Source: Macrostomum lignano (lineage: Eukaryota). Taken from it: a stretch of DNA of 43,040 bases. Location of the stretch: the NCBI GenBank assembly GCA_002269645.1, contig NIVC01004530.1:1-43040 (forward strand). Direction: 5' to 3'. Positions within the stretch are counted from its first letter, which is position 1; the number at the start of each line of letters is the position of its first letter. This document shows, piece after piece, positions 2,323 to 29,409 of the stretch. The notes beneath the pieces were generated by a model. The model saw only the letters and a list, made by a program, of their open reading frames with translations. It was not told the origin of the DNA and did no database searches. A program made the position numbers and the translations under genes.

Positions 2323-2700
2323 TCCACCTATACTAAATGACTAAGATTTGTCTGTCCAGATTTAACGCTCTAGTCCTTCCTTCCTATTCATCCAACTATA
2401 CTAAATCTCTAAAGTCTGTCTGTCTGTCTGTGGAATCATCATCATCATCATTCATCATCATCATCATCACAATATACTATACTTTATTTTACTATACTAA
2501 ATCTCTAAGATCTGTCTGTCTGACCGGTATTCCAGTCTACAGCCTGAATGCCTGAACCGATTTTTTTCAAACTTGCTTTATTCAATTCCAAATTCTTGTG
2601 AGATTGTGTGGGTGTAATTGCATTGAAAAATTCGAATGGGAAGATGGTTAAATATTCGAAAAACGAGTTTTCCCAATGCTTTTAATGGGAGGCTAGAAAA
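2323..2700 (+). mobile_element. Stacked Helitron-type 5' ends
   Basis: Three copies of (TCCA.)CTATACTAAAT...(TCTG)n at 2323, 2391 and ~2491, followed by TGAACCGATTTTTTTCAAACTT and TAAATATTCGAAAAAC. This resembles the 5' region of Lep1-type non-autonomous Helitrons. Confidence 0.65.
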
Positions 2701-3040
2701 GGTCAAAATCTTGACTAACTGAATAGCAATTCCAATTAAGATTGCGCCACAACTTTTCTCTCTTCATTGTGTAGTAGGCCTCAGTACTGGATGCAGTAAG
2801 GGAGAGGAAAATAATGCTCAGTAGCTGCGTGTGTACATTCTGACTCTGGCTGACTGGCGGACTACATAGACAATTGCTATTAATAGATTTCACTCAACAT
2901 GTGCATTGGCTCTGCCTGCATACAACATGTGCACACTGAGCAGCCTATCCCTGCTATGTATTTGACTGCGGTGCCAAAGCATATATGTCTGATTTTTGCG
3001 CCCTCCGATCAGTAGGCGGAATAGCCGCAGTGTAGACATT

Positions 3041-3156
3041 GGGGTCGTACTATAAAGCTGTCGTAGCGTAAGTTCGAACGTACGTCGGAACTTTTACACT
3101 GCGGAGATAAGAGCTAAGAACGATCTTATCTTACGATGGCTTTATAGAACGGGTCC
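3041..3156. mobile_element. 116-bp MITE (possibly PIF/Harbinger-like)
   Basis: Imperfect TIRs GGGGTCGTACTATAAAGCTGTCGTAG / (rc) GGACCCGTTCTATAAAGCCATCGTAAG, flanked by a 3-bp direct repeat ATT. Confidence 0.55.
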
Positions 3157-3829
3157 ATTAGGACTAGGTTTAGGCTAGGCGTAAGGTCCAAGGTTCGAGT
3201 CTGCCTCCCCAGCGGTGAATTAAAATTAAATAAATTCATTCATTGGTAGCTTGTGCCTCGACTATTTTGAACATTTTTTTGAATAATAGTAATTTAAAAA
3301 TATTTTTTAATTACAATAATTTATTTTTGCTACTCACACAAGCCACTAAGCAAATTTGATTTGATTTGTAAAATCCTAAGATCCCATTAATTGTTATTAT
3401 CTAGGTCTATGGAAGTATTAAATTACTAAACTGCAGACGATGCTGCTAAACTGCTGAGGTATTGCTAAATGCTGAGTGATGCAAAAGATTGCCGATATGT
3501 ATCGAAAATCGATTAGTGAGCCATACAATGCTGAGCTAATTTCTACATTATTGAAAGGATCATTGCAGTTTGCTGAGGATACTGATGCTGATACTGATTT
3601 CTGAGGTAGTTCCTCCAGACCTATGAGTGTATAGCTGCAAACTGCTGAGGGGATAACTATCTAAAGAGTTTTAAGTGGATAATAACGGTGAAGTATTAAG
3701 TGCAAGTTGTTGAGGCGATAACTGCGGACTGCTGAGTGAATTATTGTAGTTTGCTGATGTTAATGAAAGTTGTAGACGGCAAAGTGGATAACTGTAGGCT
3801 GCTAAGAGTACTACTGCAGTCTGTTTTGC

Positions 3830-5640
3830 GGGATTAAAAGGATTAAAAGGATATGGATGGGTGGGGGATTCTTTGGATATGGATGGGTGGGGGATTCTTT
3901 GGATATGAATGGGTGGGGATTCTTTCGATGGGGACTCTGTGAATGAGGGACTCTTTTAATAGGGATTCTTTTGAAGGGGATTCTTTGCATATGAGATGTT
4001 ATGGATGGGCAATGCATTGGATGGGAAATTCTTCAGATAGGAGAATTCCTTGAATGGGGAATTCTTTGGATCCGGGATTCTATTAATAGGGGTTCTTTGG
4101 ATGGGAGATTTTTTGATATGGATGGAGGTCGAGGATTTTTTGGATAGGGATGGATAGGGGGATTCTTCGGATCGGGGATTCTATCGATGGGGGTTCTTTG
4201 GATGGGGATTCTCTGCATGTAAGATTCTATGGATGGGCAATTCTTCAGATAGGAGAATTCCTTGAATGGGGAATTCTTCGGATCGGTGATTCTATCGATG
4301 GGAGGTTTTTTGGATGGCGGATTCTTTTCATGTGAGATTCTTTGCATCGTGGATTTTATGGGTGGTGTATTCTTTGGATGAGGGATTCTTTGTATGGGAG
4401 ATTCAGTTGGGTGAAATTTTATTGCGTGGGAAAACTGTGGCTGGAGTTTGGACGGAAAGCCCCAACGGGAGTTGGAATTGGCTAGCTGAGGAAATTGATC
4501 CCTAATCTTGCTGGGGTACTTTCTATCAGGGGATGCTTGCTATCGGAAGGACGCTTGCTCTTGGGGTATGCTTGCTCGGAAGAGAATTTTAAGATGTCAA
4601 GATTTACAAGGGGAATTATTGAGATACATGTATAAAATCTTACCTTGGGGAATTAATGACATGTGAAGGCTTAAATGGGACTTGCTGAGATGCCAAGGCT
4701 TGTGGGGGAATTGCTGAGGTGTGAAGGCTTAAAAAGGAATTGCTGAGGTCTTAAGTCTCGGGGAGGGGAATCGCTAAGATGTCAAGACTTACTGGAGGAA
4801 TTACTGAGATATGAAGGCTTACTGGGAGAATTACTGAGATATCAAGGCTTGGGGAGGGGAATTACTGAGATGTCAAGGCTTTGGACGGGGAGAAATTGGT
4901 AACATGTCAAGGCTTGCGCCGGAATTGCTTAGATGTCAATGCTTGGGGAAAATTTCTGAGGTGTCGAGGCTTGGGGAAATTGCTGAAATGTTAAGTCTTG
5001 GGGAATTCTATGGATTGATGATTCTTTGGATGAGGGATGCTTCTAATGGATAAATTTGGATAGGTGATTCATTGGGCAATTTCTTCGGTGGGGCATTGTT
5101 TCGATTGAGGGTTTTTTGAATGGGGGATTCTTTAGATGAATGATTCTTTAGATGGGGGTTATTTGACGGGGGTTTTTTAGATGAGAGGATTCTGGATTCT
5201 TTGGCCAATTATGCTTTTGATGGGGGATTATTTAAGGATGTGAATTATTTAGAGGGGGATTTTTTGGAGAAGTAATTTTTTGGATATGGATGGTTAAGGT
5301 GATTATTTAGATAGGAATGGATGGGGAAATTCTTTGGATAGGGATGAATAGGAGGATTCTTGGGATAGGGATGGATGGGGGATTGTTTAGATAGGGATGG
5401 ATGGGCGATTCATTAAATAGGGAATTCTACAGATAGAGGATTCCTTGAATGGGCAATTCTTCGGATCGGGGATTCTGTCGATGGGGGGTTCTTTGTATGG
5501 GATTCTTTGGATGAGGGTTTTTTGCATGTGAGATTATTTGCATCAGGGACTTTATGGATTAGAGATTCTTTGGATGGGGGGGGTTCAGTTGGGTGAATTT
5601 CTTTTGCGTGGAAAAACTTTGGTAGGAGTTCTGACGGAAA
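3830..5640. repeat. Degenerate G/A/T-rich minisatellite blocks
   Basis: Recurrent GGGGATTCTTTGGATG-like motifs (3830-4400, 5005-5600) and GGGGAATTGCTGAGATGTCAAGGCTT-like motifs (4590-5005). A block duplicates between ~4230-4485 and ~5420-5667. Confidence 0.8.
4460..4485 (+). mobile_element. Internal Helitron 3' terminus
   Basis: CCCC-AAC-GGGA + GTTGGAATTGG (11 nt) + CTAG. Confidence 0.6.
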
Positions 5641-5641
5641 G

Positions 5642-5667
5642 CCCCAACGGGGGTTGGAATTGGCTAG
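5642..5667 (+). mobile_element. Internal Helitron 3' terminus
   Basis: CCCC-AAC-GGGG + GTTGGAATTGG (11 nt) + CTAG followed by T. Confidence 0.7.
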
Positions 5668-5900
5668 TCAAATATACTAAAAATCAAAACTATATGTATA
5701 TATGTCAATTGGTGCCATGTAAAATAGCCGTCTTCTCGTCGTTTACGCGAATGCGTTGTCCGATTTTCTTCAAATTTGCACCATTCGATCACAAATTTTT
5801 GCGTCTCGGTACATGCATTTTGGCTAAGAAATTGCTCGATGCTGAAGGCATTAAATATTCGAAAAACATGCTTTTTTGCAAAGGTCAAGCAAACTTTTCG
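5668..5900 (+). mobile_element. Helitron-type 5' end directly abutting the previous CTAG
   Basis: TCAAATATACTAAAAATC start. Shares CCGATTTTCTTCAAATTTG and TAAATATTCGAAAAAC with 2553-2664. Confidence 0.6.
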
Positions 5901-6196
5901 ACTTGAAATGCATAAGAATGCTAAGAGAAAAAATTGACTGGTTGAATTCTGATTCTGAAATAGATTGCATCATTACTGAATTGTAACTCCGACTTGAATT
6001 GCGTCACAGTATTTAAAATGCAGTGTGGAAGCGTAGCACCAGACTTGATTTAGATTGCGTAGCACCAGACTTGATTCAGTCAACTTTAATTTAATTGAGA
6101 CTGATACTGACTTGCCTGGGAAATTGATTATGTCATAACTGCTTCGTGAGTGAGTGTTGAATTATATAGGTGCTACAATTTCATTTATAAATTCGA

Positions 6197-6270
6197 TAAG
6201 AGCTAGCCTAGATGTGAACAGACTGGACTGCCAATGTCGCGACCTGGGTTCGAATCTTAGTAGAGAAATG
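6197..6270 (+). other. Degenerate tRNA-derived (SINE-head-like) segment
   Basis: A-box-like TAGCCTAGATG, B box GGTTCGAATC in a CTGGG/CTTAG stem, downstream T7 run. The acceptor and anticodon stems do not close, so it is not a functional tRNA. Confidence 0.3.
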
Positions 6271-6363
6271 TTTTTTTATTGAAAGCTTTTATTAAAGGAC
6301 TAATTAAAGGACTAAAGGTGTCATAGTATAGAGTATAGTATAGAGTATAGTATAGTACAGGTA

Positions 6364-6748
6364 TAAACAATCATAGAAGCGTCATGTAAAAATCATAGAA
6401 GCGTCATGAAAAATCATAGAAGCGTCATGTAAAAAATCATAGAAGCGTCATGTAAACAATCATAGAAGTGTCATGTAAAAATCATAAAAGCGTCATGAAA
6501 AATCATAGAAGCGTCATGTAAACAATCGTAAAAGCGTCATGTAAACAATCATAGAAGCGTCATGTAAAAAATCATAGAAGCGTCATGTAAAAATCAGAAG
6601 CATCATGTAAAAATCATAGAAGCGTCATGTAAAAATCATAGAAGCGTCATGTAAAAAATCATAGAAGCGTCATGTAAAAAATCATAGAAGCGTCATGTAA
6701 ACAATCATAGAAGCGTCAGGTAAAAATCATAGAAGCGTCATGTAAAAA
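6364..6748. repeat. ~22-bp minisatellite AAAAATCATAGAAGCGTCATGT
   Basis: About 17 direct copies with small length variants. Confidence 0.95.
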
Positions 6749-6807
6749 TCAATTTTCAATCAATAATTTTTGTCATTGTGATTTTTTTGTGTTTGTGATT
6801 TCAGAGC

Positions 6808-7060
6808 TCTACAGTCAGTAAACAGACAATAAAGTCTCTAAACAGACAATACAGCCTCTAAACAGACAATGCAGTCTCTAAAAAGACAATACAGCCTCTA
6901 AACACACAATACAGCCTTTAAACAGACAATACAGTCGTTTAACAGACAATACAGCCTCTAAACAGACAATACAGTCGTTTAACAGACAATACAGCCTCTA
7001 AACAGACAATAATACAGTCACTAATACAGCCTCTAAACAGACCATAAAATACAGTCAGTA
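6808..7060. repeat. 20-bp satellite CAGCCTCTAAACAGACAATA (leading short array)
   Basis: Direct repeats visible in the sequence. Confidence 0.9.
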
Positions 7061-8017
7061 AACAGATATAGTACAGGTATAAGCAGGTCAAACCTGTATG
7101 TATAATTGGAATTTATGAAGCAGCCCTCATTGAGAGTAGGTTGACTGCATCTTAACTGGGCTAAAAGAGTTTGTGAATGGTGTATAGGAGCTGCTCTATA
7201 TACCCTGTGGTTCCAGACTCTAAAAGGAGCATTTGCAGTCAAGCTCTGTAGCAGCCTTAAGCAGAGCTGAGCGACTTAATGTTTGGTTTGAGAATGAATG
7301 TCTCTACATTTGCTTACACCGAATGCATGCAATTGAGCAGTGACGCGAGTCGGCAGGTAGTCAGGATGGCATATACATGTGCATTTTTGTACCGCTAAAG
7401 CTATACTGGCTGCTTGTCGATGGCATCATCTGCTGAAGCGACAGTCGATCCTTTTGTAATAAATTATTACATTTTTCAATATCTGTACGAAATATTAAAC
7501 TTGCTCAGCGTTAGTAGTCAGAAGCAGATCATACATATATCGTTGGAATAAATACAAGTGTTTGTTTAACTTTTGTTTCAATTTTTAAACTTCAATTTGT
7601 GGTTGTTAATAGTTTAAAATTTAATTTGCCGTTTGCTTCTTTGTTAGTTATAGCAGTTAAAGATGGATAAAACAGTTTTTTGTACTGTGTATAATAATCG
7701 AAAAACTTATAAATGTTTAATAGTTCGGCGAATTCATTCATGCAGTTTCGTATTGTTCTACTTTCAAAGTAAGCCAGTATGAAATGGTAAGTGTGTATGT
7801 ACGGTCATTCTTTGTCATGACATGCTATGGTGAGAATGAATTATACTTTGAATATTTCATGGCATTAGAATATTCTGTTCACAAAACTTTGTACTGGTGC
7901 GCCATTCTTTCAAAAGTCCAAAAAAATAAATAAGTCTATCGCGGATTTTAATCAAAAGTCAAAAAAGTAATATAGTTTACTAAGATATAGTTTATTTATA
8001 TATATTAAAATAAATAT

Positions 8018-8591
8018 TCATTGGAAATTCATTGGCTGCGGCTGCTGTTGCTGCGGCTGCTGTTGCTGCTGCTGCGGCTGCTGCTGCTGCTGTTGCTGCT
8101 GCTGCGGCTGCTGCTGCTGCTGTTGCTGCGGCTGCTGTTGCTGCTGCTGCGGCTGCTGCTGCTGCTGTTGCTGCGGCTGCTGATGCTGCTGCTGTTGCTG
8201 CGGCTGCTCCTGTTGCTGCGGCTGCTGCGGCTGCTGCTGCTGCTGTTGCTGCTGCTGTTGCTGCTGCAGAAGGCGGGCGGCGGCCTTCATCGCGTTGCAG
8301 CTGGCTACGCGGTGGCGGCCTCCGCAGAAGAAACAAACGACTGGCAATTAAAAGAAGGGAAATTTTTGCAAAATTTATCAGTAATAATACGAGTAGCATG
8401 AAAGTCGGTAACAGGCTACAATTAGATTAAATTTAGGACTATACTCGAATGTACTCAAAGCTGAAGATTTACAGTGTCTTAGGAAGGTACTCACTACTCT
8501 TTCCGCGTGGGCCGCTGCCGCGCTGCCAGCCGCCTCGCCTACCGCTGCCGCCTCGCCTTCTACCGCCGCCGAATATTTGTGTAATATGCAT
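8018..8591 (-). CDS. Spliced RG-rich / CCHC zinc-knuckle / polyQ protein, ~139 aa (exon 1 8591-8495, exon 2 8340-8018), copy 1
   Basis: Exon 1 MHITQIFGGGRRRGGSGRRGGWQRGSGPRGKS ends at a GTGAGT donor (phase 1). Acceptor ttttaattgccAG. The join gives S-I-VCFFCGGRHRVASC (CX2CX3HX4C), then a Q/P tract. No internal stops. Confidence 0.6.
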
Positions 8592-9364
8592 CTTATCTTT
8601 TTATTATTATGACTCTAAAAACGAATCAGACTATATAGGCACTGAAACTGAGGTGTAGGGGCGAATAAAATAGGGGTTATGGGTTGTGCGTCGTCGCTTC
8701 GCTGAGCCTTAGGGTGGTTTTCTGTACAAGTCTGAGGCTTCCTATTGGTCGGTTGTGCAAGCGAGGGTGTGCAGGTCGGGGCTTTAGAGCGGCGATTGGT
8801 CTACAAATTGTCTAGCGTACTGGTGGCCATGCAGCCTGACTTGAGGGTCGCCTGTTTTTCTTTCCCGGCTTAGAAGGTGCGAAAATGGCTGAACCAGTCA
8901 GCCGCGCCATACAAGTTTTGTTTGTACAGTGAAGTACATGCGACCGCGAACTCTTAAAGTATTGCCTACACTTGCTGAGTCAGTCGGTGAGAATTGTGTC
9001 ACCATAAAACGAGATAGCAAACAAACAAAAGTATCAGGTGAGAAAAGTGAGGAGACCTTAGCTTACAGCAGAGGGTGCAGTGTGTGCTTTAATGCTGGGC
9101 ACGGGAGTGATTGGGGTGGGTTGTGTGTCCAGCCAATTAGATTGTGTAATAAAAATAAAAATGAATGCAAAATTGAGTACAATGTACTGGGCTGGAGGGG
9201 AGGTGGTGTTTTTTCGTGGCTACTTTTATTTCAACATATATACTTTGTGATTTGTTGAGCCTATTTTGTTGTCTTAAAGTTAAAGCTTATCATTGCTTAG
9301 AAAAAGTTTGATTGATACTTTTTATCAGTTCCTTTTTCGACTGTTGGATAATTCTTTGTGCAAA
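8592..9364. promoter_or_regulatory. Putative bidirectional promoter region between the divergent genes (repeated in each unit)
   Basis: CpG/GC-richer island at ~8660-8930 with reverse CCAAT boxes (ATTGG at ~8746 and ~8796), lying between two head-to-head ATGs. Function is inferred. Confidence 0.35.
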
Positions 9365-10936
9365 ATGGCCTCTTATTCACAGTCACCTTTGAAAAAGAAG
9401 TCGAAGAAGGATGGGATTGCAGGTCTGACAGCTGGTCAAATGCCTACGCCTGTCACTGGCCTTGTGACGAACCTGAAAGACGTTCACACGTATAATAACA
9501 ACAAAGGTCAGGGCCAAGTGTTTTCGTTCATCTTGGTGGACGACTCATCTGAGATGCGAGTCAGCGTCTTCGGTAAGGACCTGCAAGCTGTCTGGGAAGT
9601 TTGCAACGATGCTGAAGCCGTTCGCATATCCGGCGGGATGGTGAAGACTGCCAAGCCAGAGTACAAGTGTACGGACAATCCACTTGAGATGACCGTTTCC
9701 GTGGATTCCAAGGGCTTCATCTAAAGAAGCAACGAAGTGCCGGTTGCTCGAGATCCAGTAATTAATTACACTAGTCAACTGCAACAGACTGGATTGGACA
9801 GGTGAGTGACTAATTGATTTAGTAGTTTTCGTCATGTATTAGTGCTCAAATATCGTGGAGTGAAAGTACATGTAATCGTGTTTTTGGGTGACAGTTAGTT
9901 TGCCTTGTGTTTGAAAATATTTATCATCGCAACACTGTACGAAGCCTGGGTTATTAGCTTCATGATGCTACTGTTAGTGTACAAATAGAAATCTAATGTG
10001 ATGCTTAAGTTAGTGTGTAAATAGTTAAAAAAAGTATTGCTCCCTTTCACTATCAGAATCGTCGATGTGCTGGGAGTGATCGACGCCAGGCAACCGTCTG
10101 AAGAAGTCCGAACGCGTGCTGGGAAGAAGGTTAACGTAGCCAAAGTGACTTTGGTTGACCGAACCTTCGGCTCTGTAAGCTGCACGTTTTGGGGTTCGTC
10201 GTCAGCTCAAGTGGACAGGTGGAACATCGGCGATGTTTTGTCCATAAGAAGAGCAAAGGTGCAGGAGTATTCGGGCTCCGTCACGTTGGGATGCTCGAAC
10301 TCTGACGTAAAATGCAACAGTGACGATGGTGAAGCCAGAGTCTTGGCTGACTGGTATAGGAATGCAAAGGAAGGCGATACCCGGTTTGAACCTGTGCCCG
10401 CTCCAGTGCCTACTCCAGGACTGATGAGATTGGAGACGAAAGTGTGACCACCATTCGGGAGCCTGCTGCCTTGTTTGAGTTTTATGACAAACACTCAAAG
10501 GAAATTGTGAGGGACTTCGGAAATGCCAAAAGGTGAGTGATTTTCTACAAATTTAGTTGATTATTAAATATAATAAAGTTTGTTAGGTTACAAGGTTAGA
10601 CAGGTGTTCAGTTAAGCCATTTATTTTGATAATCGCAAATTGAATAGCAAAGAGAACAGTACTTATTGTGTTGCTTTTATGTATTCATGCTTAATAGGAC
10701 TTTCTTGTCACACATATTCTATATCCTTATAAATTTTTTCTTCTCGCAGATTCGATACAGACGAGTGTCGACGGGTGATGACCGGAGTCAGTTTCACCGC
10801 AGTGGAGGTGTCGACAGTCAGGATGAGTCGAGCAGAATGTCGTTCGATGATCACAGCGTACAGAACAGCACTTCGTATCAGTGAGTTGCCACAGTTGGCG
10901 CGTGCCACTTTTTTGACCCGAGCGTCTGATGGCTGA
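9365..10936 (+). pseudogene. RPA70 (RPA1)-like, DBD-A + DBD-B OB folds plus unrecognised C-terminus; 3 exons (9365-9801, 10057-10532, 10750-10936), copy 1
   Basis: GQVFSFILVDDSSEMRVSVF resembles DBD-A [28 protein letters not shown]...LVDRTFGSVSCTFWG...EARVLADWY resembles DBD-B. Both introns are GT-AG phase 2. In-frame TAA at 9722-9724 and a frameshift at ~10390-10445. Confidence 0.85.
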
Positions 10937-11116
10937 GAGTGAAATCAAAGTCGCGTAGAGTCTCAATGAACTGATAGCCCTGAGAGAGTGCATTGAGTAA
11001 ATCCTATTTACGAGGAATGTTTCATAAGTTCCTCCTTATACTCATAGGACATAAATATAACAGTACTTAAAGTAGACATTACACAATAAATACAGTCGTC
11101 TAACATAAAATGATGC

Positions 11117-12710
11117 AGTCCCTAAACAGGAAAATACAGCCTCTAAACAGAAAATGCAGTCTCTAAACAGACAATGCAGCCTCTAAATAGACAATACAGT
11201 CTCTAAACAGACAATGCAGCCTCTAAACAGAGAATGCAGCCTCTAAATAGACAATGCAGCCTCTAAACAGACAATACAGCCTCTAAACAGACAATACAGC
11301 CTCTAAACAGACAATACAGCCTCTAAACAGAGAATGCAGCCTCTAAACAGACAATACAGCCTCTAAACAGACAATACAGCCTCTAAACAGACAATACAGC
11401 CTCTAAACAGACAATACAGCCTCTAAACAGACAATACAGCCTCTAAACAGACAATACAGCCTCTAAACAGACAATGCAGCCTCTAAACAGAGAATGCAGC
11501 CTCTAAATAGACAATACAGTCTCTAAACAGACAATACAGCCTCTAAACAGAGAATGCAGCTTCTAAATAGACAATGCAGCCTCTAAACAGAGAATGCAGC
11601 CTCTAAATAGACAATACAGTCTCTAAACAGACAATACAGCCTCTAAACAGAGAATGCAGCCTCTAAATAGACAATACAGTCTCTAAACAGAGAATGCAGT
11701 CTCTAAACAGACAATACAGCCTCTAAACAGACAATGCAGCCTCTAAACAGAGAATGCAGCCTCTAAATAGACAATGCAGCCTCTAAACAGAGAATGCAGC
11801 CTCTAAATAGACAATACAGTCTCTAAACAGACAATACAGCCTCTAAACAGAGAATGCAGCTTCTAAATAGACAATGCAGCCTCTAAACAGAGAATGCAGC
11901 CTCTAAATAGACAATACAGTCTCTAAACAGACAATACAGCCTCTAAACAGAGAATGCAGCCTCTAAATAGACAATACAGTCTCTAAACAGACAATGCAGC
12001 CTCTAAACAGAGAATGCAGCCTCTAAATAGACAATACAGTCTCTAAACAGACAATACAGCCTCTAAACAGAGAATGCAGCCTCTAAATAGACAATACAGT
12101 CTCTAAACAGACAATGCAGCCTCTAAACAGAGAATGCAGCCTCTAAATAGACAATGCAGCCTCTAAACAGACAATACAGCCTCTAAACAGAGAATGCAGC
12201 CTCTAAACAGACAATACAGTCTCTAAACAGACAATACGGCCTCTAAACAGACAATACAGCCTTTAAACAGACAATTCAGTCTCTAAACAGACAATTCAGT
12301 CTCTAAACAGACAATACAGTCTCTAAACAGAGAATGCAGCCTCTAAACAGAGAATGCAGCCTCTAAATAGACAATACAGTCTCTAAACAGACAATGCAGC
12401 CTCTAAACAGAGAATGCAGCCTCTAAATAGACAATGCAGCCTCTAAACAGACAATACGGCCTCTAAACAGACAATACAGCCTTTAAACAGACAATTCAGT
12501 CTCTAAACAGACAATTCAGTCTCTAAACAGACAATACAGTCTCTAAATAGGCAATACAGTCTCTAAACAGGCAATACAGTCTCTAAATAGGCAATACAGT
12601 CTCTAAACAGACAATACAGCCTCTAAACAGACAATAAAGCCTCTAAACAGACAATACAGCCTCTAAACAGACCATAAAGTACAGTCAGTAAACAGACAAT
12701 AAAGCCTCTA
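11117..12710. repeat. 20-bp satellite array (~80 copies)
   Basis: CAG(C/T)CTCTAAA(C/T)AGA(C/G)AAT(A/G) repeats with 60-bp trimer periodicity in parts. Confidence 0.97.
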
Positions 12711-12711
12711 A

Positions 12712-13031
12712 TACGTCAGTTTGAGGCAGGTATCTGACTTTAACTGGTTTTAAACCCCCCCCCGCGCCGGCCTGGCCTCGCTTTGGTGGGTTGGTGGGGT
12801 GCTGGTGCACTGCGTGCGTGCAGGGCTTAGCGCAGCCTCCCCCCCGCTCTGTGCTATTTAGTCACGCGTCGCGGCCGCTGAGTCGGCGTAATTTTGGCAA
12901 AATATTTTTTTCTCTTTTAAATTACAAAATCAATATATTTCGTCGCTTAAGGGGTTCGTTTTCCCTTTCTGGGCCGCGTCTGCCGGTCTTTTGTGCCACT
13001 TGCTTTTATTCTGCGTTAGTCTTTTGGGGTT
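12712..13031. other. ~320-bp GC-rich insertion at the satellite/unit junction (possible MITE)
   Basis: Interrupts the satellite (cctctaa | ... | taaacagacc). Contains TTAAACCCC...GGGGTTTAA short inverted ends. Absent at the other junction type. Confidence 0.5.
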
Positions 13032-14040: not shown

Positions 14041-14614
14041 TCATTGGAAATTCATTGGCTGCGGCTGCTGTTGCTGCGGCTGCTGTTGCTGCTGCTGCGG
14101 CTGCTGCTGCTGCTGTTGCTGCTGCTGCGGCTGCTGCTGCTGCTGTTGCTGCGGCTGCTGTTGCTGCTGCTGCGGCTGCTGCTGCTGCTGTTGCTGCGGC
14201 TGCTGATGCTGCTGCTGTTGCTGCGGCTGCTCCTGTTGCTGCGGCTGCTGCGGCTGCTGCTGCTGCTGTTGCTGCTGCTGTTGCTGCTGCAGAAGGCGGG
14301 CGGCGGCCTTCATCGCGTTGCAGCTGGCTACGCGGTGGCGGCCTCCGCAGAAGAAACAAACGACTGGCAATTAAAAGAAGGGAAATTTTTGCAAAATTTA
14401 TCAGTAATAATACGAGTAGCATGAAAGTCGGTAACAGGCTACAATTAGATTAAATTTAGGACTATACTCGAATGTACTCAAAGCTGAAGATTTACAGTGT
14501 CTTAGGAAGGTACTCACTACTCTTTCCGCGTGGGCCGCTGCCGCGCTGCCAGCCGCCTCGCCTACCGCTGCCGCCTCGCCTTCTACCGCCGCCGAATATT
14601 TGTGTAATATGCAT
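14041..14614 (-). CDS. RG-rich / CCHC knuckle / polyQ protein, copy 2
   Basis: Same sequence as copy 1 at offset +6023. Confidence 0.6.
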
Positions 14615-19005: not shown

Positions 19006-19579
19006 TCATTGGAAATTCATTGGCTGCGGCTGCTGTTGCTGCGGCTGCTGTTGCTGCTGCTGCGGCTGCTGCTGCTGCTGTTGCTGCTGCTGCGGCTGCT
19101 GCTGCTGCTGTTGCTGCGGCTGCTGTTGCTGCTGCTGCGGCTGCTGCTGCTGCTGTTGCTGCGGCTGCTGATGCTGCTGCTGTTGCTGCGGCTGCTCCTG
19201 TTGCTGCGGCTGCTGCGGCTGCTGCTGCTGCTGTTGCTGCTGCTGTTGCTGCTGCAGAAGGCGGGCGGCGGCCTTCATCGCGTTGCAGCTGGCTACGCGG
19301 TGGCGGCCTCCGCAGAAGAAACAAACGACTGGCAATTAAAAGAAGGGAAATTTTTGCAAAATTTATCAGTAATAATACGAGTAGCATGAAAGTCGGTAAC
19401 AGGCTACAATTAGATTAAATTTAGGACTATACTCGAATGTACTCAAAGCTGAAGATTTACAGTGTCTTAGGAAGGTACTCACTACTCTTTCCGCGTGGGC
19501 CGCTGCCGCGCTGCCAGCCGCCTCGCCTACCGCTGCCGCCTCGCCTTCTACCGCCGCCGAATATTTGTGTAATATGCAT
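19006..19579 (-). CDS. RG-rich / CCHC knuckle / polyQ protein, copy 3
   Basis: Same sequence as copy 1 at offset +10988. Confidence 0.6.
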
Positions 19580-20351
19580 CTTATCTTTTTATTATTATGA
19601 CTCTAAAAACGAATCAGACTATATAGGCACTGAAACTGAGGTGTAGGGCGAATAAAATAGGGGTTATGGGTTGTGCGTCGTCGCTTCGCTGAGCCTTAGG
19701 GTGGTTTTCTGTACAAGTCTGAGGCTTCCTATTGGTCGGTTGTGCAAGCGAGGGTGTGCAGGTCGGGGCTTTAGAGCGGCGATTGGTCTACAAATTGTCT
19801 AGCGTACTGGTGGCCATGCAGCCTGACTTGAGGGTCGCCTGTTTTTCTTTCCCGGCTTAGAAGGTGCGAAAATGGCTGAACCAGTCAGCCGCGCCATACA
19901 AGTTTTGTTTGTACAGTGAAGTACATGCGACCGCGAACTCTTAAAGTATTGCCTACACTTGCTGAGTCAGTCGGTGAGAATTGTGTCACCATAAAACGAG
20001 ATAGCAAACAAACAAAAGTATCAGGTGAGAAAAGTGAGGAGACCTTAGCTTACAGCAGAGGGTGCAGTGTGTGCTTTAATGCTGGGCACGGGAGTGATTG
20101 GGGTGGGTTGTGTGTCCAGCCAATTAGATTGTGTAATAAAAATAAAAATGAATGCAAAATTGAGTACAATGTACTGGGCTGGAGGGGAGGTGGTGTTTTT
20201 TCGTGGCTACTTTTATTTCAACATATATACTTTGTGATTTGTTGAGCCTATTTTGTTGTCTTAAAGTTAAAGCTTATCATTGCTTAGAAAAAGTTTGATT
20301 GATACTTTTTATCAGTTCCTTTTTCGACTGTTGGATAATTCTTTGTGCAAA

Positions 20352-21923
20352 ATGGCCTCTTATTCACAGTCACCTTTGAAAAAGAAGTCGAAGAAGGATG
20401 GGATTGCAGGTCTGACAGCTGGTCAAATGCCTACGCCTGTCACTGGCCTTGTGACGAACCTGAAAGACGTTCACACGTATAATAACAACAAAGGTCAGGG
20501 CCAAGTGTTTTCGTTCATCTTGGTGGACGACTCATCTGAGATGCGAGTCAGCGTCTTCGGTAAGGACCTGCAAGCTGTCTGGGAAGTTTGCAACGATGCT
20601 GAAGCCGTTCGCATATCCGGCGGGATGGTGAAGACTGCCAAGCCAGAGTACAAGTGTACGGACAATCCACTTGAGATGACCGTTTCCGTGGATTCCAAGG
20701 GCTTCATCTAAAGAAGCAACGAAGTGCCGGTTGCTCGAGATCCAGTAATTAATTACACTAGTCAACTGCAACAGACTGGATTGGACAGGTGAGTGACTAA
20801 TTGATTTAGTAGTTTTCGTCATGTATTAGTGCTCAAATATCGTGGAGTGAAAGTACATGTAATCGTGTTTTTGGGTGACAGTTAGTTTGCCTTGTGTTTG
20901 AAAATATTTATCATCGCAACACTGTACGAAGCCTGGGTTATTAGCTTCATGATGCTACTGTTAGTGTACAAATAGAAATCTAATGTGATGCTTAAGTTAG
21001 TGTGTAAATAGTTAAAAAAAGTATTGCTCCCTTTCACTATCAGAATCGTCGATGTGCTGGGAGTGATCGACGCCAGGCAACCGTCTGAAGAAGTCCGAAC
21101 GCGTGCTGGGAAGAAGGTTAACGTAGCCAAAGTGACTTTGGTTGACCGAACCTTCGGCTCTGTAAGCTGCACGTTTTGGGGTTCGTCGTCAGCTCAAGTG
21201 GACAGGTGGAACATCGGCGATGTTTTGTCCATAAGAAGAGCAAAGGTGCAGGAGTATTCGGGCTCCGTCACGTTGGGATGCTCGAACTCTGACGTAAAAT
21301 GCAACAGTGACGATGGTGAAGCCAGAGTCTTGGCTGACTGGTATAGGAATGCAAAGGAAGGCGATACCCGGTTTGAACCTGTGCCCGCTCCAGTGCCTAC
21401 TCCAGGACTGATGAGATTGGAGACGAAAGTGTGACCACCATTCGGGAGCCTGCTGCCTTGTTTGAGTTTTATGACAAACACTCAAAGGAAATTGTGAGGG
21501 ACTTCGGAAATGCCAAAAGGTGAGTGATTTTCTACAAATTTAGTTGATTATTAAATATAATAAAGTTTGTTAGGTTACAAGGTTAGACAGGTGTTCAGTT
21601 AAGCCATTTATTTTGATAATCGCAAATTGAATAGCAAAGAGAACAGTACTTATTGTGTTGCTTTTATGTATTCATGCTTAATAGGACTTTCTTGTCACAC
21701 ATATTCTATATCCTTATAAATTTTTTCTTCTCGCAGATTCGATACAGACGAGTGTCGACGGGTGATGACCGGAGTCAGTTTCACCGCAGTGGAGGTGTCG
21801 ACAGTCAGGATGAGTCGAGCAGAATGTCGTTCGATGATCACAGCGTACAGAACAGCACTTCGTATCAGTGAGTTGCCACAGTTGGCGCGTGCCACTTTTT
21901 TGACCCGAGCGTCTGATGGCTGA
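20352..21923 (+). pseudogene. RPA70-like gene, copy 3
   Basis: Offset +10987. Same TAA (20709-20711) and same frameshift. Confidence 0.85.
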
Positions 21924-22103
21924 GAGTGAAATCAAAGTCGCGTAGAGTCTCAATGAACTGATAGCCCTGAGAGAGTGCATTGAGTAAATCCTATTTACGA
22001 GGAATGTTTCATAAGTTCCTCCTTATACTCATAGGACATAAATATAACAGTACTTAAAGTAGACATTACACAATAAATACAGTCGTCTAACATAAAATGA
22101 TGC

Positions 22104-23337
22104 AGTCCCTAAACAGGAAAATACAGCCTCTAAACAGAAAATGCAGTCTCTAAACAGACAATGCAGCCTCTAAATAGACAATGCAGCCTCTAAACAGAGA
22201 ATGCAGCCTCTAAATAGACAATGCAGCCTCTAAACAGAGAATGCAGCCTCTAAATAGACAATACAGCCTCTAAACAGACAATGCAGCCTCTAAACAGACA
22301 ATGCAGCCTCTAAACAGAGAATGCAGCCTCTAAATAGACAATGCAGCCTCTAAACAGAGAATGCAGCCTCTAAATAGACAATACAGCCTCTAAACAGACA
22401 ATACAGCCTCTAAACAGACAATACAGCCTCTAAACAGAGAATGCAGCCTCTAAACAGACAATACAGCCTCTAAATAGACAATGCAGCCTCTAAATAGACA
22501 ATGCAGCCTCTAAACAGACAATACAGCCTCTAAATAGACAATGCAGCCTCTAAACAGAGAATGCAGCCTCTAAATAGACAATGCAGCCTCTAAACAGAGA
22601 ATGCAGTTTCTAAATAGACAATACAGTCTCTAAACAGACAATACAGCCTCTAAACAGAGAATGCAGCCTCTAAATAGACAATACAGTCTCTAAACAGACA
22701 ATACAGCCTCTAAACAGAGAATGCAGCTTCTAAATAGACAATGCAGCCTCTAAACAGAGAATGCAGCCTCTAAATAGACAATACAGTCTCTAAACAGACA
22801 ATACAGCCTCTAAACAGAGAATGCAGCCTCTAAATAGACAATACAGTCTCTAAACAGACAATACAGCCTCTAAACAGAGAATGCAGCTTCTAAACAGACA
22901 ATGCAGCCTCTAAACAGAGAATGCAGCCTCTAAATAGACAATACAGTCTCTAAACAGACAATACAGCCTCTAAACAGAGAATGCAGCCTCTAAATAGACA
23001 ATACAGTCTCTAAACAGACAATGCAGCCTCTAAACAGAGAATGCAGCCTCTAAATAGACAATGCAGCCTCTAAACAGACAATACGGCCTCTAAACAGACA
23101 ATACAGCCTTTAAACAGACAATTCAGTCTCTAAACAGACAATTCAGTCTCTAAACAGACAATACAGTCTCTAAATAGGCAATACAGTCTCTAAACAGGCA
23201 ATACAGTCTCTAAATAGGCAATACAGTCTCTAAACAGACAATACAGCCTCTAAACAGACAATAAAGCCTCTAAACAGACAATACAGCCTCTAAACAGACC
23301 ATAAAGTACAGTCAGTAAACAGACAATAAAGCCTCTA
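22104..23337. repeat. 20-bp satellite array (~60 copies)
   Basis: Direct repeats. Confidence 0.97.
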
Positions 23338-23338
23338 A

Positions 23339-23657
23339 TACGTCAGTTTGAGGCAGGTATCTGACTTTAACTGGTTTTAAACCCCCCCCCGCGCCGGCCT
23401 GGCCTCGCTTTGGTGGGTTGGTGGGGTGCTGGTGCTCTGCGTGCGTGCAGGGCTTAGGGCAGCCTCCCCCCGCTCTGTGCTATTTAGTCACGCGTCGCGG
23501 CCGCTGAGTCGGCGTAATTTTGGCAAAATATTTTTTTCTCTTTTAAATTACAAAATCAATATATTTCGTCGCTTAAGGGGTTCGTTTTCCCTTTCTGGGC
23601 CGCGTCTGCCGGTCTTTTGTGCCACTTGCTTTTATTCTGCGTTAGTCTTTTGGGGTT
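23339..23657. other. Second copy of the ~320-bp GC-rich insertion
   Basis: Near-identical to 12712-13031, with a few substitutions (e.g. gcactgcgtg vs gctctgcgtg). Confidence 0.5.
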
Positions 23658-24579
23658 TAAACAGACCATAAAATACAGCCTCTAAACAGACCATAAAATA
23701 CAGTCAGTAAACAGAAATAGTACAGGTATAAGCAGGTCAAACATGTATGTATAATTGGAATTTATGAAGCAGCCCTCATTGAGAGTAGGTTGACTGCATC
23801 TTAACTGGGCTAAAAGAGTTTGTGAATGGTGTATAGGAGCTGCTCTATATACCCTGTGGTTCCAGACTCTAAAAGGAGCATTTGCAGTCAAGCTCTGTAG
23901 CAGCCTTAAGCAGAACTGAGCGACTCAATGTTTGGTTTGAGAATGAGTGTCTCTACATTTGCTTACACCGAATGCATGCAATTGAGCAGTGACGCGAGTC
24001 GGCAGGTAGTCAGGATGGCATATACATGTAAATTTTTGTACCGCTAAAGCTATACTGGCTGCTTGTCGATGGCATCATCTGCTGAAGCGACAGTCGATCC
24101 TTTTGTTAATAAATTATTACATTATTGCAAATTTTCACTTGCTACGCTCGTATTAGCAGCAGAAGATCATATCATATCATTTGAATAAATACATGGGTTG
24201 GTTTAAATATTGTTTTAACTGCTGAACGTCAATTTTCGGTTGTTTAAAATTTAATTAAAAGCACATTGTTTTTGTTGCCGTTTGCTTCTTTGTTAGTTAT
24301 AGCAGTTAAAAATGGATAAAACAGTTTTTTGTACTGTGTATAATAATCGTAAAACTTACAGAAATGTTTAATAGTTCGGCGAATTCATTCATGCAGTTTC
24401 GTATTGTTCTACTTTCAAAGTAAGCAAGTATGAAATGGTAAGTGTATATGCAACGGTCATTCTTTTTAATGACATGCTATGGCGAAAATTTGTACTTCGA
24501 ATATTTCATGGCATTAGAATATTCTGTTCACAAAACTTTGTACTGGTGCGGTTCACAAACTTATGCAGATGCCAGGCCA

Positions 24580-24660
24580 TAGGTTTGGTTTTAAGGTTAG
24601 GCTTGTATAGGGTTAGTGTTCAGATTGGCGTTAGAGCTAGGGTTAGGGTTAGGGTTTGTT
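24580..24660 (+). repeat. Degenerate telomere-like (TTAGGG) tract
   Basis: ...GCTAGGGTTAGGGTTAGGGTTTG. Related tracts at 29085-29165 and 29265-29300. Confidence 0.6.
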
Positions 24661-24957
24661 TATGACTTAGTTCATGTAGCTTATTTATTAATTAAAAATG
24701 TATTCCATTCTTTTTTCGTTCTGTATGCAAGTATGAAATGGTACGTGTATATGTAGGGTCCTTCTTTGTAATGACATCCTATGGCGGAAATGAATTTTAC
24801 TCCAAATATTTCACGTCATTAGAACATTCTGTTATCAAAACTTTTCACTGGTGCGTCATCGTTTCAAAAGTTCGAAAAATTAAATAAGTCTATCACGGAT
24901 TTTAATCAAAAGTCAAAAAACGTTCAGTAAATTGTTACTATTGTATTATTAAAATTT

Positions 24958-25775
24958 TTAGTCAATTTTCATTCTGCGTGGCGATGGCTGCTGCGGCTGC
25001 TGTTGCTGCGGCTGCTGTTGCTGCGGCTGCTGTTGCTGTGGCTGCTGTTGCTGCGGCTGCTGTTGCTGCGGCTGCTGTTGCTGCGGCTGCTGTTGCTGCG
25101 GCTGCTGTTGCTGCGGCTGCTGTTGCTGCGGCTGCTGTTGCTGCGGCTGCTGTTGCTGCGGCTGCTGTTGCTGCGGCTGCTGTTGCTGCGGCTGCTGTTG
25201 CTGCGGCTGCTGTTGCTGCGGCTGCTGTTGCTGCGGCTGCTGTTGCTGTGGCTGCTGTTGCTGCGGCTGCTGTTGCTGCGGCTGCTGTTGCTGCGGCTGC
25301 TGTTGCTGCGGCTGCTGTTGCTGTGGCTGCTGTTGCTGCGGCTGCTGTTGCTGCGGCTGCTGTTGCTGCGGCTGCTGTTGCTGCGGCTGCTGTTGCTGCG
25401 GCTGCTGTTGCTGCGGCTGCTGTTGCTGCGGCTGCTGTTGCTGCGGCTGCTGTTGCTGTGGCTGCTGTTGCTGCGGCTGCTGTTGCTGCGGCTGCTGTTG
25501 CTGCGGCTGCTGTTGCTGCGGCTGCTGTTGCTGTGGCTGCTGTTGCTGTGGCTGCTGTTGCTGCGGCTGCTGTTGCTGCGGCTGCTGTTGCTGCGGCTGC
25601 TGTTGCTGCGGCTGCTGTTGCTGCGGCTGCTGTTGCTGCGGCTGCTGTTGCTGCGGCTGCTGTTGCTGCGGCTGCTGTTGCTGCGGCTGCTGTTGCTGCT
25701 GCAAATGGCGGGCGGCGGCCTTCATAGCGTTACAGCTGGCTACGCGGTGGCGGCCTCCGCAGAAGAAACAAACAA
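24958..25775 (-). pseudogene. Knuckle/polyQ gene, copy 4: exon 2 only, with expanded (QQQQP)n
   Basis: The 15-bp unit GCTGCTGTTGCTGCG is repeated ~47 times (~24985-25695). The RG-rich exon 1 is deleted (the sequence jumps from acaattagat to gactct). Confidence 0.7.
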
Positions 25776-26639
25776 CTGGCAATTAAAAGAGGAGAAAATT
25801 TTTGCAAATTTATCAGTAATAATACGAGTAGCATGAAAGTCAGTAACAGGCTACAATTAGATGACTCTAATATAGAAATATATGACTCTAAATGTATAAA
25901 TCAGACTATATAAGCACTGAAACTGAGGTGTAGGGGCGAATAAAATAGGGGTTATGGGTTGTGCGTCGTCGCTTCGCTGAGCCTTAGGGTGGTTTTCTGT
26001 ACAAGTCTGAGGCTTCCTATTGGTCGGTTGTGCAAGCGAGGGTGTGCAGGTCGGGGCTTTAGAGCGGCGATTGGTCTACAAATTGTCTAGCGTACTGGTG
26101 GCCATGCAGCCTGACTTGAGGGTCGCCTGTTTTTCTTTCCCGGCTTAGAAGGTGCGAAAATGGCTGAACCAGTCAGCCGCGCCATACAAGTTTTGTTTGT
26201 ACAGTGAAGTACATGCAACCGCGAACTCTTAAAGTATTGCCTACACTTGCTGAGTCAGTCGGTGAGAATTGTGTCACCATAAAACGAGATAGCAAACAAT
26301 CAAAAGTATCAGGTGAGAAAAGTGAGGAGACCTTAGCTTACAGCAGAGGGTGCAGTGTGTGCTTTAATGCTGGGCACGGGAGTGATTGGGGTGGGTTGTG
26401 TGTCCAGCCAATTAGATTGTGTAATAAAAATAAAAATGAATGCAAAATTGAGTACAATGTACTGGGCTGGAGGGGAGGTGGTGTTTTTTCGTGGCTACTT
26501 TTATTTCAACATATATACTTTGTGATTTGTTGAGCCTATTTTGTTGTCTTAAAGTTAAAGCTTATCATTGCTTAGAAAAAGTTTGATTGATACTTTTTAT
26601 CAGTTCCTTTTTCGACTGTTGGATAATTCTTTGTGCAAA

Positions 26640-27844
26640 ATGGCCTCTTATTCACAGTCACCTTTGAAAAAGAAGTCGAAGAAGGATGGGATTGCAGGTC
26701 TGACAGCTGGTCAAATGCCTACGCCTGTCACTGGCCTTGTGACGAACCTGAAAGACGTTCACACGTATAATAACAACAAAGGTCAGGGCCAAGTGTTTTC
26801 GTTCATCTTGGTGGACGACTCATCTGAGATGCGAGTCAGCGTCTTCGGTAAGGACCTGCAAGCTGTCTGGGAAGTTTGCAACGATGCTGAAGCCGTTCGC
26901 ATATCCGGCGGGATGGTGAAGACTGCCAAGCCAGAGTACAAGTGTACGGACAATCCACTTGAGATGACCGTTTCCGTGGATTCCAAGGGCTTCATCTAAA
27001 GAAGCAACGAAGTGCCGGTTGCTCGAGATCCAGTAATTAATTACACTAGTCAACTGCAACAGACTGGATTGGACAGGTGAGTGACTAATTGATTTAGTAG
27101 TTTTCGTCATGTATTAGTGCTCAAATATCGCGGAGTTAAAGTACATGTAATCGTGTTTTTGGGTGACAGTTAGTTTGTCTTGTGTTTGAAAATATTTATC
27201 ATCGCAACACTGTACGAAGCCTGGGTTATTAGTTTCATGATGCTCCTGTTAGTGTACAAATACTTTAGAAATCTAATGTGATGCTTAAGTTAGTGTGTAA
27301 ATAGTTAAAAAAAGTACTGCTCCCTTTCACTATCAGAATCGTCGATGTGCTGGGAGTGATCGACGCCAGGCAACCGCCTGAAAAAGTCCGAACGCGTGCT
27401 GGGAAGAAGGTTAACGTAGCCAAAGTGACTTTGGTTGACCGAACCTTCGGCTCTGTAAGCTGCACGTTTTGGGGTTCGTCGTCAGCTCAAGTGGACAGGT
27501 GGAACATCGGCGATGTTTTGTCCATAAGAAGAGCAAAGGTGCAGGAGTATTCGGGCTCCGTCACGTTGGGATGCTCGAACTCTGACGTAAAATGCAACAG
27601 TGACGATGGTGAAGCCAGAGTCTTGGCTGACTGGTATAGGAATGCAAAGGAAGGCGATACCCGATTTGACGAGTGTCGACGGGTGATGACCGGAGTCAGT
27701 TTCACCGCAGTGGAGGTGCCGACTGTCAGGATGAGTCGAGCAGAATGTCGTTCGATGATCACAGCGTACAGAACAGCACTTCGTATCAGTGAGTTGCCAC
27801 AGTTGGCGCGTGCCACTTTTTTGACCCGAGCGTCTGATGGCTGA
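26640..27844 (+). pseudogene. RPA70-like gene, copy 4, with a 372-bp in-frame deletion fusing exon 2 to exon 3
   Basis: Same TAA at 26997-26999. The junction GATACCCGATTTGA|CGAGTGTCG removes the equivalent of 10390-10761. Confidence 0.85.
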
Positions 27845-28021
27845 GAGTGAAATCAAAGTCGCGTAGAGTCTCAATGAACTGATAGCCCTGAGAGAGCACA
27901 TTGAGTAAATCCTATTTACGAGGAATGTTTCATAAATTCCTCCTTATACTCATAGGGACATAAATATAACAGTACTTAAAGTAGAAATTACACAATAAAT
28001 ACAGTCTTTTAACAGAATGAT

Positions 28022-28215
28022 GCAGTCCCTAAACAGGCAATACAGCCTCTAAACACACAATACAGCTTTTAAACAGACAATACAGTCGTTTAACAGACAA
28101 TACAGCCTCTAAACAGACAATACAGTCGTTTAACAGACAATACAGCCTCTAAACAGACAATAATACAGTCACTAATACAGCCTCTAAACAGACCATAAAA
28201 TACAGTCAGTAAACA
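28022..28215. repeat. 20-bp satellite, short array (~10 copies)
   Basis: Direct repeats. Confidence 0.9.
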
Positions 28216-29383
28216 GATATAGTACAGGTATAAGCAGGTCAAACCTGTATGTATAATTGGAATTTATGAAGCAGCCCTCATTGAGAGTAGGTTGACTGCA
28301 TCTTAACTGGGCTAAAAGAGTTTGTGAATGGTGTATAGGAGCTGCTCTGTATACCCTGTGGTTCCAGACTCTAAAAGGAGCATTTGCAGTCAAGCTCTGT
28401 AGCAGCCTTAAGCAGAGCGGAGCGACTTAATGTTTGGTTTGAGAATGAATGTCTCTACATTTGCTTACACCGAATGCATGCAATTGAGCAGTGACGCGAG
28501 TCGGCAGGTAGTCAGGATGGCATATACATGTAAATTTTTGTACCGCTAAAGCTATACTGGCTGCTTGTCGATGGCACCATCTGCCGAAGCGACAGTCGAT
28601 CCTTTTGTTAATAAATTATTACATTATTGCAAATTTTCACTTGCTACGCTCGTATTAGCAGCAGAAGATCATATCATATCATTTGAATAAATACATGGGT
28701 TGGTTTAAATATTGTTTTAACTGCTGAACGTCAATTTTCGGTTGTTTAAAATTTAATTAAAAGCACATTGTTTTTGTTGCCGTTTGCTTCTTTGTTAGTT
28801 ATAGCAGTTAAAAATGGATAAAACAGTTTTTTGTACTGTGTATAATAATCGTAAAACTTACAGAAATGTTTAATAGTTCGGCGAATTCATTCATGCAGTT
28901 TCGTATTGTCCTACACTTAAAGTATTCAAGTATTAAATGGTAGGCGTATATGCACGTTCTTTGTAGTGATGTGCTATCGCGGAAATAAATAAAGCTTCAA
29001 ATATTTCATGTCACTGAGAATATTCTGTTCACAAAAATTTGGTGCTTTAGCGCTTCACAAACTTATGCAAATGTCAGGCTGTAGGGTTGGTGTTAGGGTT
29101 TCAAGGTTTAGTGTTAGGTTCAGGGTATAGCGTTAAGATTTGGCTTAGGGCTAGGGTTAGGGTAGCTTATAACTTAGCTCATGTAGCCTATTAAAATGTT
29201 TATGGAAGCGTCATGCAAAAAAATAATGCAAGCATCATGCAAAAACTCGTGAACAAAATATTAAATTTAGGGTTATGGTTAGGGTTGGGGTTATGGTTAG
29301 AAGTTTGACAGGAGATTTTTTAAGATTTCAAGGCTTAGCTACATGTTGCTTATTAAAAAAACCTGTATTGCATTTCTTTTGCT

Positions 29384-29409
29384 CCCCAACGGGGGGCGTT
29401 GATTGCTAG
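29384..29409 (+). mobile_element. Outer Helitron 3' terminus
   Basis: CCCC-AAC-GGGG + GGCGTTGATTG (11 nt) + CTAG followed by T. Confidence 0.75.

Follow-up and report, generated by a model that had tools for sequence, protein, structure and literature searches.

Canonical Helitrons begin with a 5' TC, end with a 3' CTRR, carry a palindrome of 16 to 20 nt about 11 bp from the 3' end, insert between A and T, and leave no target-site duplication (TSD). In Helraiser, a hairpin terminator, read-through of the 3' end, and head-to-tail circles with TC/CTAG joints have been reported (PMC4778049), and Helitrons that abut 5' to 3' end, together with read-through of weak terminators, are documented for both Helibat and Helraiser (PMC4778049). 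Here we describe a locus of this kind in the flatworm Macrostomum lignano. The stretch analyzed (hereafter the window) comprises 43,040 nt of contig NIVC01004530.1, positions 1 to 43,040 of the forward strand, and contains a block of 27,087 bp (2323-29409) within a decayed gene for a P-element/THAP9-like transposase. Our favored interpretation, to which we assign a probability of roughly 0.8, is that this dead gene was interrupted, 7 nt into exon 2, by two stacked non-autonomous Helitrons of the canonical type, here called A (3.3 kb) and B (23.7 kb).

Helitrons A and B share with canonical Helitrons (the type of Kapitonov and Jurka 2001, and Helibat/Helraiser) the TC and CTAG ends, a GC-rich hairpin about 10 nt from the 3' end, and a T as 3' flank. 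Also shared are the apparent absence of an ordinary TSD, the head-to-tail arrangement, and the occurrence of non-autonomous copies that have only their termini in common with a partner encoding Rep and a PIF1 helicase. They differ in their 5' flank, which is T (or G), in three unexplained nucleotides at the joint with the host gene, and in the unusual length of B, which is due to an internal tandem array. By the published definition of a canonical Helitron (PMC4067079), both elements are classified as canonical Helitrons and not as Helentrons. An RPA70-like OB-fold accessory open reading frame (ORF) is also found in RPA-carrying Helitrons and Helentrons (plant Helitrons; mite and insect Helentrons), but the RPA-like gene described here resides in an element lacking Rep/Hel and is present in four tandem copies. 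Similarly, non-autonomous rolling-circle bodies consisting largely of tandem repeats are known from satellite-bearing Helentron derivatives (HINE/DINE-1, and the satellite-like repeats borne by oyster Helentrons; PMC7492417). In contrast to those elements, the ones in the window have canonical Helitron termini without subterminal inverted repeats, and their repeats range from satellites of 15 to 30 bp to a gene-bearing unit of 4.5 to 6 kb.

The interrupted gene is a relic on the minus strand. Its first exon (29502..29636, with ATG at 29636; MPRKCSVVGCKSNYESEGLVTKVHLFPKDSVERERWRKALPNTLE) encodes MPRKC...NTLE, including the first C2 of a C2CH THAP domain, and aligns with the N-termini of the M. 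lignano proteins P0001 and P0018. It is followed by an 85-nt GT..AG intron (29417..29501), whose position matches that of the intron in the relatives L001 and L004, and by the first 7 nt of exon 2, TCCGTGA (29410..29416), which form the right flank of the block. On the other side of the block exon 2 continues at 2148..2322 with (K)TDHMGICAKHW...PPSIFDGVPSSCL, and the body of the transposase (1089..2147) is decayed: its frame changes several times, and it includes a stop codon. Four M. lignano THAP proteins (P0001 and P0004-6; 94-95 aa) come closest to the relic, at 80-85% identity, and the continuation of exon 2 by itself is 84-85% identical to these.

The preliminary description of the window had assigned both flanks to one transposase family, and collinearity with two homologues bears this out. 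In L001, a more distant relative from a Logan assembly, a THAP domain precedes a TNP-like RNase H gene, and the products match THAP and TNP-like_RNaseH_N; tblastx and tblastn comparisons place this sequence in the same order as window positions 29636-29500 followed by 2320 to ~1089. A query made of the window fragments matches P0018 (BOX15_Mlig002392g1, with THAP and Tnp_P_element) with E = 5e-66, 45% identity, and 78% coverage. The relic therefore resembles P element and THAP9 transposases in having an N-terminal C2CH THAP domain, which is complete after the flanks are joined, ahead of a stretch that aligns collinearly with Tnp_P_element and TNP-like RNase H proteins, although the fragments of that stretch fall below Pfam thresholds through decay. 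In contrast to P element and THAP9 transposases, the window copy is broken by frameshifts and a stop codon and is truncated below ~1089. The host ORF is dead: there is a frameshift in the THAP domain, and the transposase part contains further frame breaks and a stop.

On the plus strand, the left junction reads ...GATCTGTCT up to position 2322 and then TCCACCTATACTAAAT (TCCACCTATACTAAATG in a longer read), and the right junction reads ...GCTCCCCAACGGGGGGCGTTGATTGCTAG up to 29409 and then TCACGGACT (or, at other extents, TTTGCTCCCCAACGGGGGGCGTTGATTGCTAG followed by TCACGGACTAAAAG). The block begins with TC and ends with a hairpin and CTAG, as had been noted previously. When TCCGTGA (29416-29410) is joined on the minus strand to AGACAGATCAC (2322 downward; also written AGACAGATCACATGGGAATCTGCGCCAAACACTGG), the result reads SVKTDHMGICAKHWPPD. 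The joined product scores 37.4 bits against the Pfam THAP model in a single continuous stretch, compared with 25.9 bits for exon 1 alone and no score for exon 2 alone, confirming that the flanks together rebuild a C2CH THAP domain. At the position of the block the exon is unbroken, and without an intron, in the relatives L001, L004, and L005. Because their exon is continuous at this point, the block is an insertion and not an intron, which supports the earlier view of an exon split within a THAP/P-element-type gene. The accompanying claim that the frame is restored exactly stands only in part: the join is in frame, but it contains one extra codon (K), and a -1 frameshift follows about 50 nt downstream. 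It stems from one nucleotide missing in the A-run at 2266-2263, puts PPSIFDGVPSSCL (the PPSIF motif) out of frame, and makes the rebuilt ORF stop 28 codons past the join. There is no long duplication at the ends of the block, and the TC at 2323-24 is identical to the TC at 29410-11, so that the boundary can be slid by 2 nt and the absence of a TSD is indistinguishable from a 2-bp duplication of TC.

The block had been regarded as the product of one insertion, but it contains an internal junction, GGCTAG/TCAAATATACTAAAAATC at 5667/5668 (slashes mark joints here and below). This CTAG/TC junction resolves it into two different Helitrons arranged head to tail on the plus strand. Helitron A (2323..5667) starts with TCCACCTATACTAAAT and ends with CCCCAACGGGGG (5642-5653), 10 further nt, and CTAG (5664-5667). 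Its 5' motif is present three times, with repeats at 2391 and 2492, and its body consists mainly of G-rich minisatellites of 16 to 30 bp. Helitron B (5668..29409), which lacks Rep/Hel, starts with TCAAATATACTAAAAATC. Its 5' kilobase is 88% identical to positions 6351-5372 of the M. lignano contig NIVC01004209.1 (L002), a 23-bp satellite occupies 6364-6751, and the 3' tail (29193-29409) contains degenerate telomere-like repeats, the terminal hairpin, and CTAG (29406-29409). The likeness between A and B is limited to their terminal motifs, and the block is therefore not a dimer of one element.

Each element has a 5' end of the form TC..TATACTAAA and a CCCCAACGGGG hairpin about 10 nt ahead of its terminal CTAG. 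The hairpin that closes the block is a 17-nt stem-loop (29381-29397) separated by 8 nt from CTAG, and thus lies 12 nt from the end; the hairpin of A (5642-5653) is shorter. The 11-mer core CCCCAACGGGG occurs three times on the plus strand of the window, at the end of the block, at 5642, and in a relic at 29936, against a chance expectation that we estimate at about 0.02. At 5642 it precedes TTGGAATTGG and CTAG, after which TCAAATATACTAAAAATC begins directly. Folding z-scores of the 3' hairpins are weak because the stems are short, and conservation among copies is the stronger argument.

That these are real Helitron termini is confirmed by their recurrence elsewhere in M. lignano. L002 and L003, two contigs reached by way of RPA-like and P-element proteins, have hairpin-CTAG and TC..TATACTAAA ends of this same kind. 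The TC found in the window at 2323-24 and 5668-69 thus has counterparts in TCCACC and TC..TATACTAAA starts in L006, L002, and L003, and the CTAG at 29406-29409 and 5664-5667 has counterparts in copies in L002 and L003. Two junctions in L002 (...CCCC(C)AACGGGGGG..GCTAG/TCCTATATACTAAAAATG) are of the same style as the internal junction of the block, and free 3' ends of the form CTAG/T are present in both L002 and L003. Free 5' ends were found in L002 (...caata/tccaa/TCCAAATATACTAAATCTC), twice in L003 (...aacta/tcctatata/TCCTATATACTAAAAATG and ...ccaaaaa/TCTAATATAC), and in L006 (...gaataa/TCCACCTGTACTAAACC), and three independent M. lignano 5' ends are preceded by A. The L006 copy has the same TCCACCT.TACTAAA start as the block next to a different flank, which fixes the 5' end of the family at TCCA..., position 2323; a near-identical copy of the 5' end of A is located in L002 at 2818. 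An alternative 5' boundary at 2320 (TCTTCCACC...), which would yield both the consensus SVTDH and a TC start, was rejected; the homology with L006 and L002 begins only at TCCA.

The contig L002 also contains a candidate for the autonomous-type partner of the window Helitrons, as the preliminary description had suggested might be found. Between its two CTAG/TC junctions are ORFs with matches to Helitron_like_N (3.6e-46) and PIF1 (1.2e-19). Past each of the two junctions, the 5' region shares 87-88% identity with window 5760-6751, and positions 10520-10779 are 80-88% identical to the 3' end of the block (29268-29409, ~140 nt). No Rep/Hel remnant was found in the window itself. The search for other loci recovered matching termini in M. 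lignano contigs but no second A-B composite. With regard to an empty allele or sister loci, neither the window RPA ORFs nor P0001 were on record as exact-protein matches, and two metagenome scans, one with the left flank and one with the 3' end, returned no match. Degenerate telomere-like repeats (TTAGGG variants) are present in the 3' subterminal region of both the window (29085-29300) and L002 (10495-10550).

Comparison with relatives, in which paralogues served as an empty site at the protein level, also revealed an excess of sequence at the join. In all eight relatives whose C2CH half could be aligned over the junction (30% to 85% identity), V-T or P-T occurs with no residue in between: SV-TDH in four proteins, RV-TDN in P0018, NV-TRH in P0021, EV-TPH in P0002, and GP-TDN in P0003. 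At the DNA level, exon 2 starts with AGA GTG ACT in L004, GAA GTC ACG in L001, and AAT GTT ACA in L005, so that the three relatives with DNA sequence all conform to NNN GTN ACN, while the window join reads TCC GTG A/AG ACA. Relative to the family, the join therefore has a surplus of 3 nt (the K codon), placed precisely at the joint, and the claim that the empty site had been reconstructed to the base is not upheld. From these alignments we infer that the ancestral site on the plus strand was CTG-TC-ACGG, and that it now reads CTG-TC-T-(TCCACC...CTAG)-TC-ACGG. We favor a gain of the 3 nt at integration, either as TCT at the 5' junction (target G^T) or as a duplication of TC plus one T, while a private K codon in the ancestor is a less likely source. 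Most likely, TCT would have been added at the 5' junction to a target CTG/TCACGG, and under a 3-nt gain the pre-insertion site would read GATCTGTCACGGA. Such an addition would be similar to 5' stutters found directly upstream of the full terminus in two other M. lignano copies, TCCAA/TCCAAATATAC (L002 2813-2830, plus strand) and TCCTATATA/TCCTATATAC (L003 423-450, plus strand), although these partial duplications may represent either junction stutter or true ends located further upstream.

The bulk of Helitron B is a 4.2-copy tandem array on the plus strand, with a unit of 4.5 to 6 kb that includes the RPA70-like gene. Units start at 7023, 13046, 18011, and 23672, followed by a partial unit at 28174-29192, and every full unit ends in 7 to 79 copies of a 20-bp satellite (CTAAACAGACAATACAGCCT). 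Outside the satellite, the cores of units 1 and 3 (7066-11088 and 18054-22075) are 100% identical over ~4 kb, and the intervening unit 2 departs from them at 8 sites (99.8% identical). Such identity of units 1 and 3 points to duplication or gene conversion in the very recent past, or else to an effect of assembly or polishing. Unit 4 is 95% identical with large indels; it contains an expansion of a 15-bp repeat, (TGCTGCGGCTGCTGT)47, at 24989-25699, which gives rise to long poly-Q/poly-A/poly-L ORFs, and a 370-bp deletion at 27668 (corresponding to 10390-10759 in unit 1) that alters the C-terminus of the RPA-like product. Near-identical units between satellite arrays indicate recent unequal crossing-over. 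The array was probably amplified in place, and B may have been far shorter at the time of insertion. The gene array had been described as cargo of the insertion; since amplification may post-date the insertion, the figure of about 63% of the window as cargo of one event is an upper bound only.

The gene in unit 1 (9365..10447, plus strand) has one exon at 9365-9724 and, after an intron, a second at ~10037-10447, and encodes two OB folds resembling RPA70 DBD-A/B. Its product matches Pfam REPA_OB_2 (1.3e-13) and the DBD-A/B region of human RPA70 (PDB 1JMC; 8e-19). Further plus-strand copies are located at 15388-16470, 20352-21434, and 26640-27844, the last of which is the one altered by the deletion. 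The only paralogues recovered are M. lignano REPA_OB_2 proteins, with 40-57% identity over ~95% of the query and two shorter matches of 63-67%. The intron of one annotated M. lignano RPA-like gene, BOX15_Mlig007159g1 (L002 10352-10824), contains a Helitron 3' fragment with telomere-like repeats, a minisatellite, the hairpin, and CTAG. The 5' region of B also contains a stretch resembling a tRNA T-arm (6235-6262, plus strand; GACCTGGGTTCGAATCTTAG, with the core GGGTTCGAATC at 6247-6257). ARAGORN called no tRNA at this stretch, which may be a fragment of a short interspersed nuclear element or otherwise tRNA-derived.

Under the two-Helitron interpretation, Rep/Hel supplied in trans, with NIVC01004209.1 as the candidate source, would nick ahead of the 5' TC and unwind toward the 3' end, pause at the 3' hairpin, cut past CTAG, and paste the strand without an ordinary TSD. 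For the A/B joint, we lean slightly toward integration of the second element exactly at the terminus of the resident one, which would itself be a Rep cleavage site. A B-type 5' end is the downstream partner in all three joints seen (one in the window and two in L002), which fits integration at a resident 3' terminus. Somewhat less probable, in our judgment, is that Rep read through the weaker terminator of A at a donor locus in which B already followed directly on A, and that the two then moved jointly. The array most likely would have arisen when blocks of the 20-bp satellite at the unit boundaries crossed over unequally, probably in part after insertion. A more general and speculative proposal, which we consider unlikely as a whole, is that Macrostomum Helitrons build mixed head-to-tail stacks by a preference of Rep for the resident 3' terminus (CTAG/T), that the partial 5' copies and the three extra nucleotides are the footprint of imprecise 5' joining, and that the amplified RPA70-like genes of the element without Rep provide the family with single-strand-binding protein in trans.

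Several observations weigh against the stacked-Helitron interpretation. The 3-nt gain is without an established Helitron mechanism, and the stutter analogy consists of two examples, with TCT being an imperfect copy of TCC. The 3' flanking base of the block is T, as in canonical Helitrons, but the 5' flanking base is T (at the boundary of the preliminary description) or G (if TCT is not part of the target) rather than the canonical A, so that the insertion does not lie between A and T. Neither an empty-site allele nor a second A-B composite was retrieved, and the number and order of events are therefore deduced. Further, the ORFs of the L002 partner are fragmented, suggesting that the partner itself is probably inactive, and the 100% identity of units could derive partly from assembly or polishing.

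A simpler alternative is that a single Helitron (2323-29409) inserted precisely into a T^T site of an exon reading SVKTDH, leaving the target unchanged, such that its removal is exact to the base. The pre-insertion sequence would then read GATCTGTCTTCACGGA. The in-frame join is consistent with this model, as is the 5' boundary at 2323, which is backed by the TCCACC start that follows another flank in L006. Non-AT sites account for 46 of 1,751 Helraiser insertions, with TT named first among the alternative target dinucleotides (PMC4778049). The Pfam THAP score is also slightly higher with K than without it (37.2 versus 36.0 bits), although the Pfam model is unable to discriminate between the two joins. 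However, the eight relatives that span the junction have no residue there, and a private 3-nt insertion at exactly this point is improbable; the internal CTAG/TC junction marks two elements, and the array units are nearly identical. We therefore regard precise insertion of one element as improbable, and the extra codon, the composite block, and the near-identical array together mean that neither base-exact restoration nor a single event is established.

The apparent T^T site, the many internal satellites, and the RPA-like gene, the last two of which are features of Helentrons and HINE derivatives (PMC4067079), are what would be expected if the elements were of the Helentron or Helitron2 type. 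We consider this very unlikely, since the subterminal or asymmetric terminal inverted repeats of that type are absent: the longest inverted match pairing the outermost 400 nt of one side of the block with those of the other is 11 nt and lies 215 and 335 nt from the ends. The 5' TC, 3' CTAG, and palindrome ~10 nt from the end are those of canonical Helitrons, and the independent M. lignano 5' ends are preceded by A. Moreover, no endonuclease domain, such as the APE endonuclease that Helentrons carry fused to Rep/Hel, was detected in the five L002 ORFs scanned, fragmentary as these ORFs are. Least likely of all is that the block is not a product of transposition but an assembly mis-join, a very large intron, or sequence captured during double-strand-break repair. 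The high repeat content with 4-kb units that are 100% identical, and the TC microhomology with three extra nucleotides, which is compatible with end-joining, could be read in this way. Yet both ends of the block match family-conserved Helitron termini to the base, the exon of the relatives is continuous at this point, and the exact placement of a 5' TC and a 3' CTAG on a split codon would not result from a mis-join.

The block is thus an ordinary nested-transposon insertion in the repeat-rich Macrostomum genome, with boundaries that were essentially right as first drawn. It provides a clean, datable case of nesting, Helitron within P element, in a flatworm model genome, and puts on record a family of Macrostomum Helitrons whose ends are defined, for which a candidate autonomous partner exists, and which carries an RPA-like gene as cargo; a literature search on two terms found no paper on Macrostomum Helitrons. 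Points of interest are the three surplus nucleotides, the head-to-tail stacking of different elements, and the amplification of the RPA-like cargo. The understanding of how Helitrons work is unchanged. The locus also illustrates that a join which restores the reading frame is no proof of a base-exact empty site, given that comparison with the family revealed the 3-nt excess.

The remainder of the window contains additional mobile elements. About 500 bp to the right of the block, upstream of the THAP start codon, lies a relic of a third Helitron 3' end (29905..29965, plus strand), with the same hairpin (core at 29936) and GCGCTGATTG; relative to L002 10740-10785, CTAG(TC) is absent. Downstream of this relic (29965), the homology with L002 extends over just 7 nt and was taken as chance. 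At the left edge, on the minus strand, positions 1..111 contain the start of a diverged RPA-like OB exon that runs past the window and is 53-56% identical to OB1 and P0008. The match of the P-element relic to its relatives ends at ~1089, truncating the copy on one side within the window, and a further Helitron-type insertion is therefore the probable cause; no Helitron 5' end or terminal motif that would account for the RPA fragment was found on the minus strand of 112-1300. On the other side of the block, an apparently intact long terminal repeat (LTR) retrotransposon of the Ty1/copia type (35572-40235, minus strand) has 262-bp LTRs that are 99.6% identical and long ORFs for gag, integrase, reverse transcriptase, and RNase H. 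It is itself nested in a relic of a non-LTR retrotransposon, whose reverse transcriptase and RNase H ORFs lie at 33605-35067 and 40198-41449.

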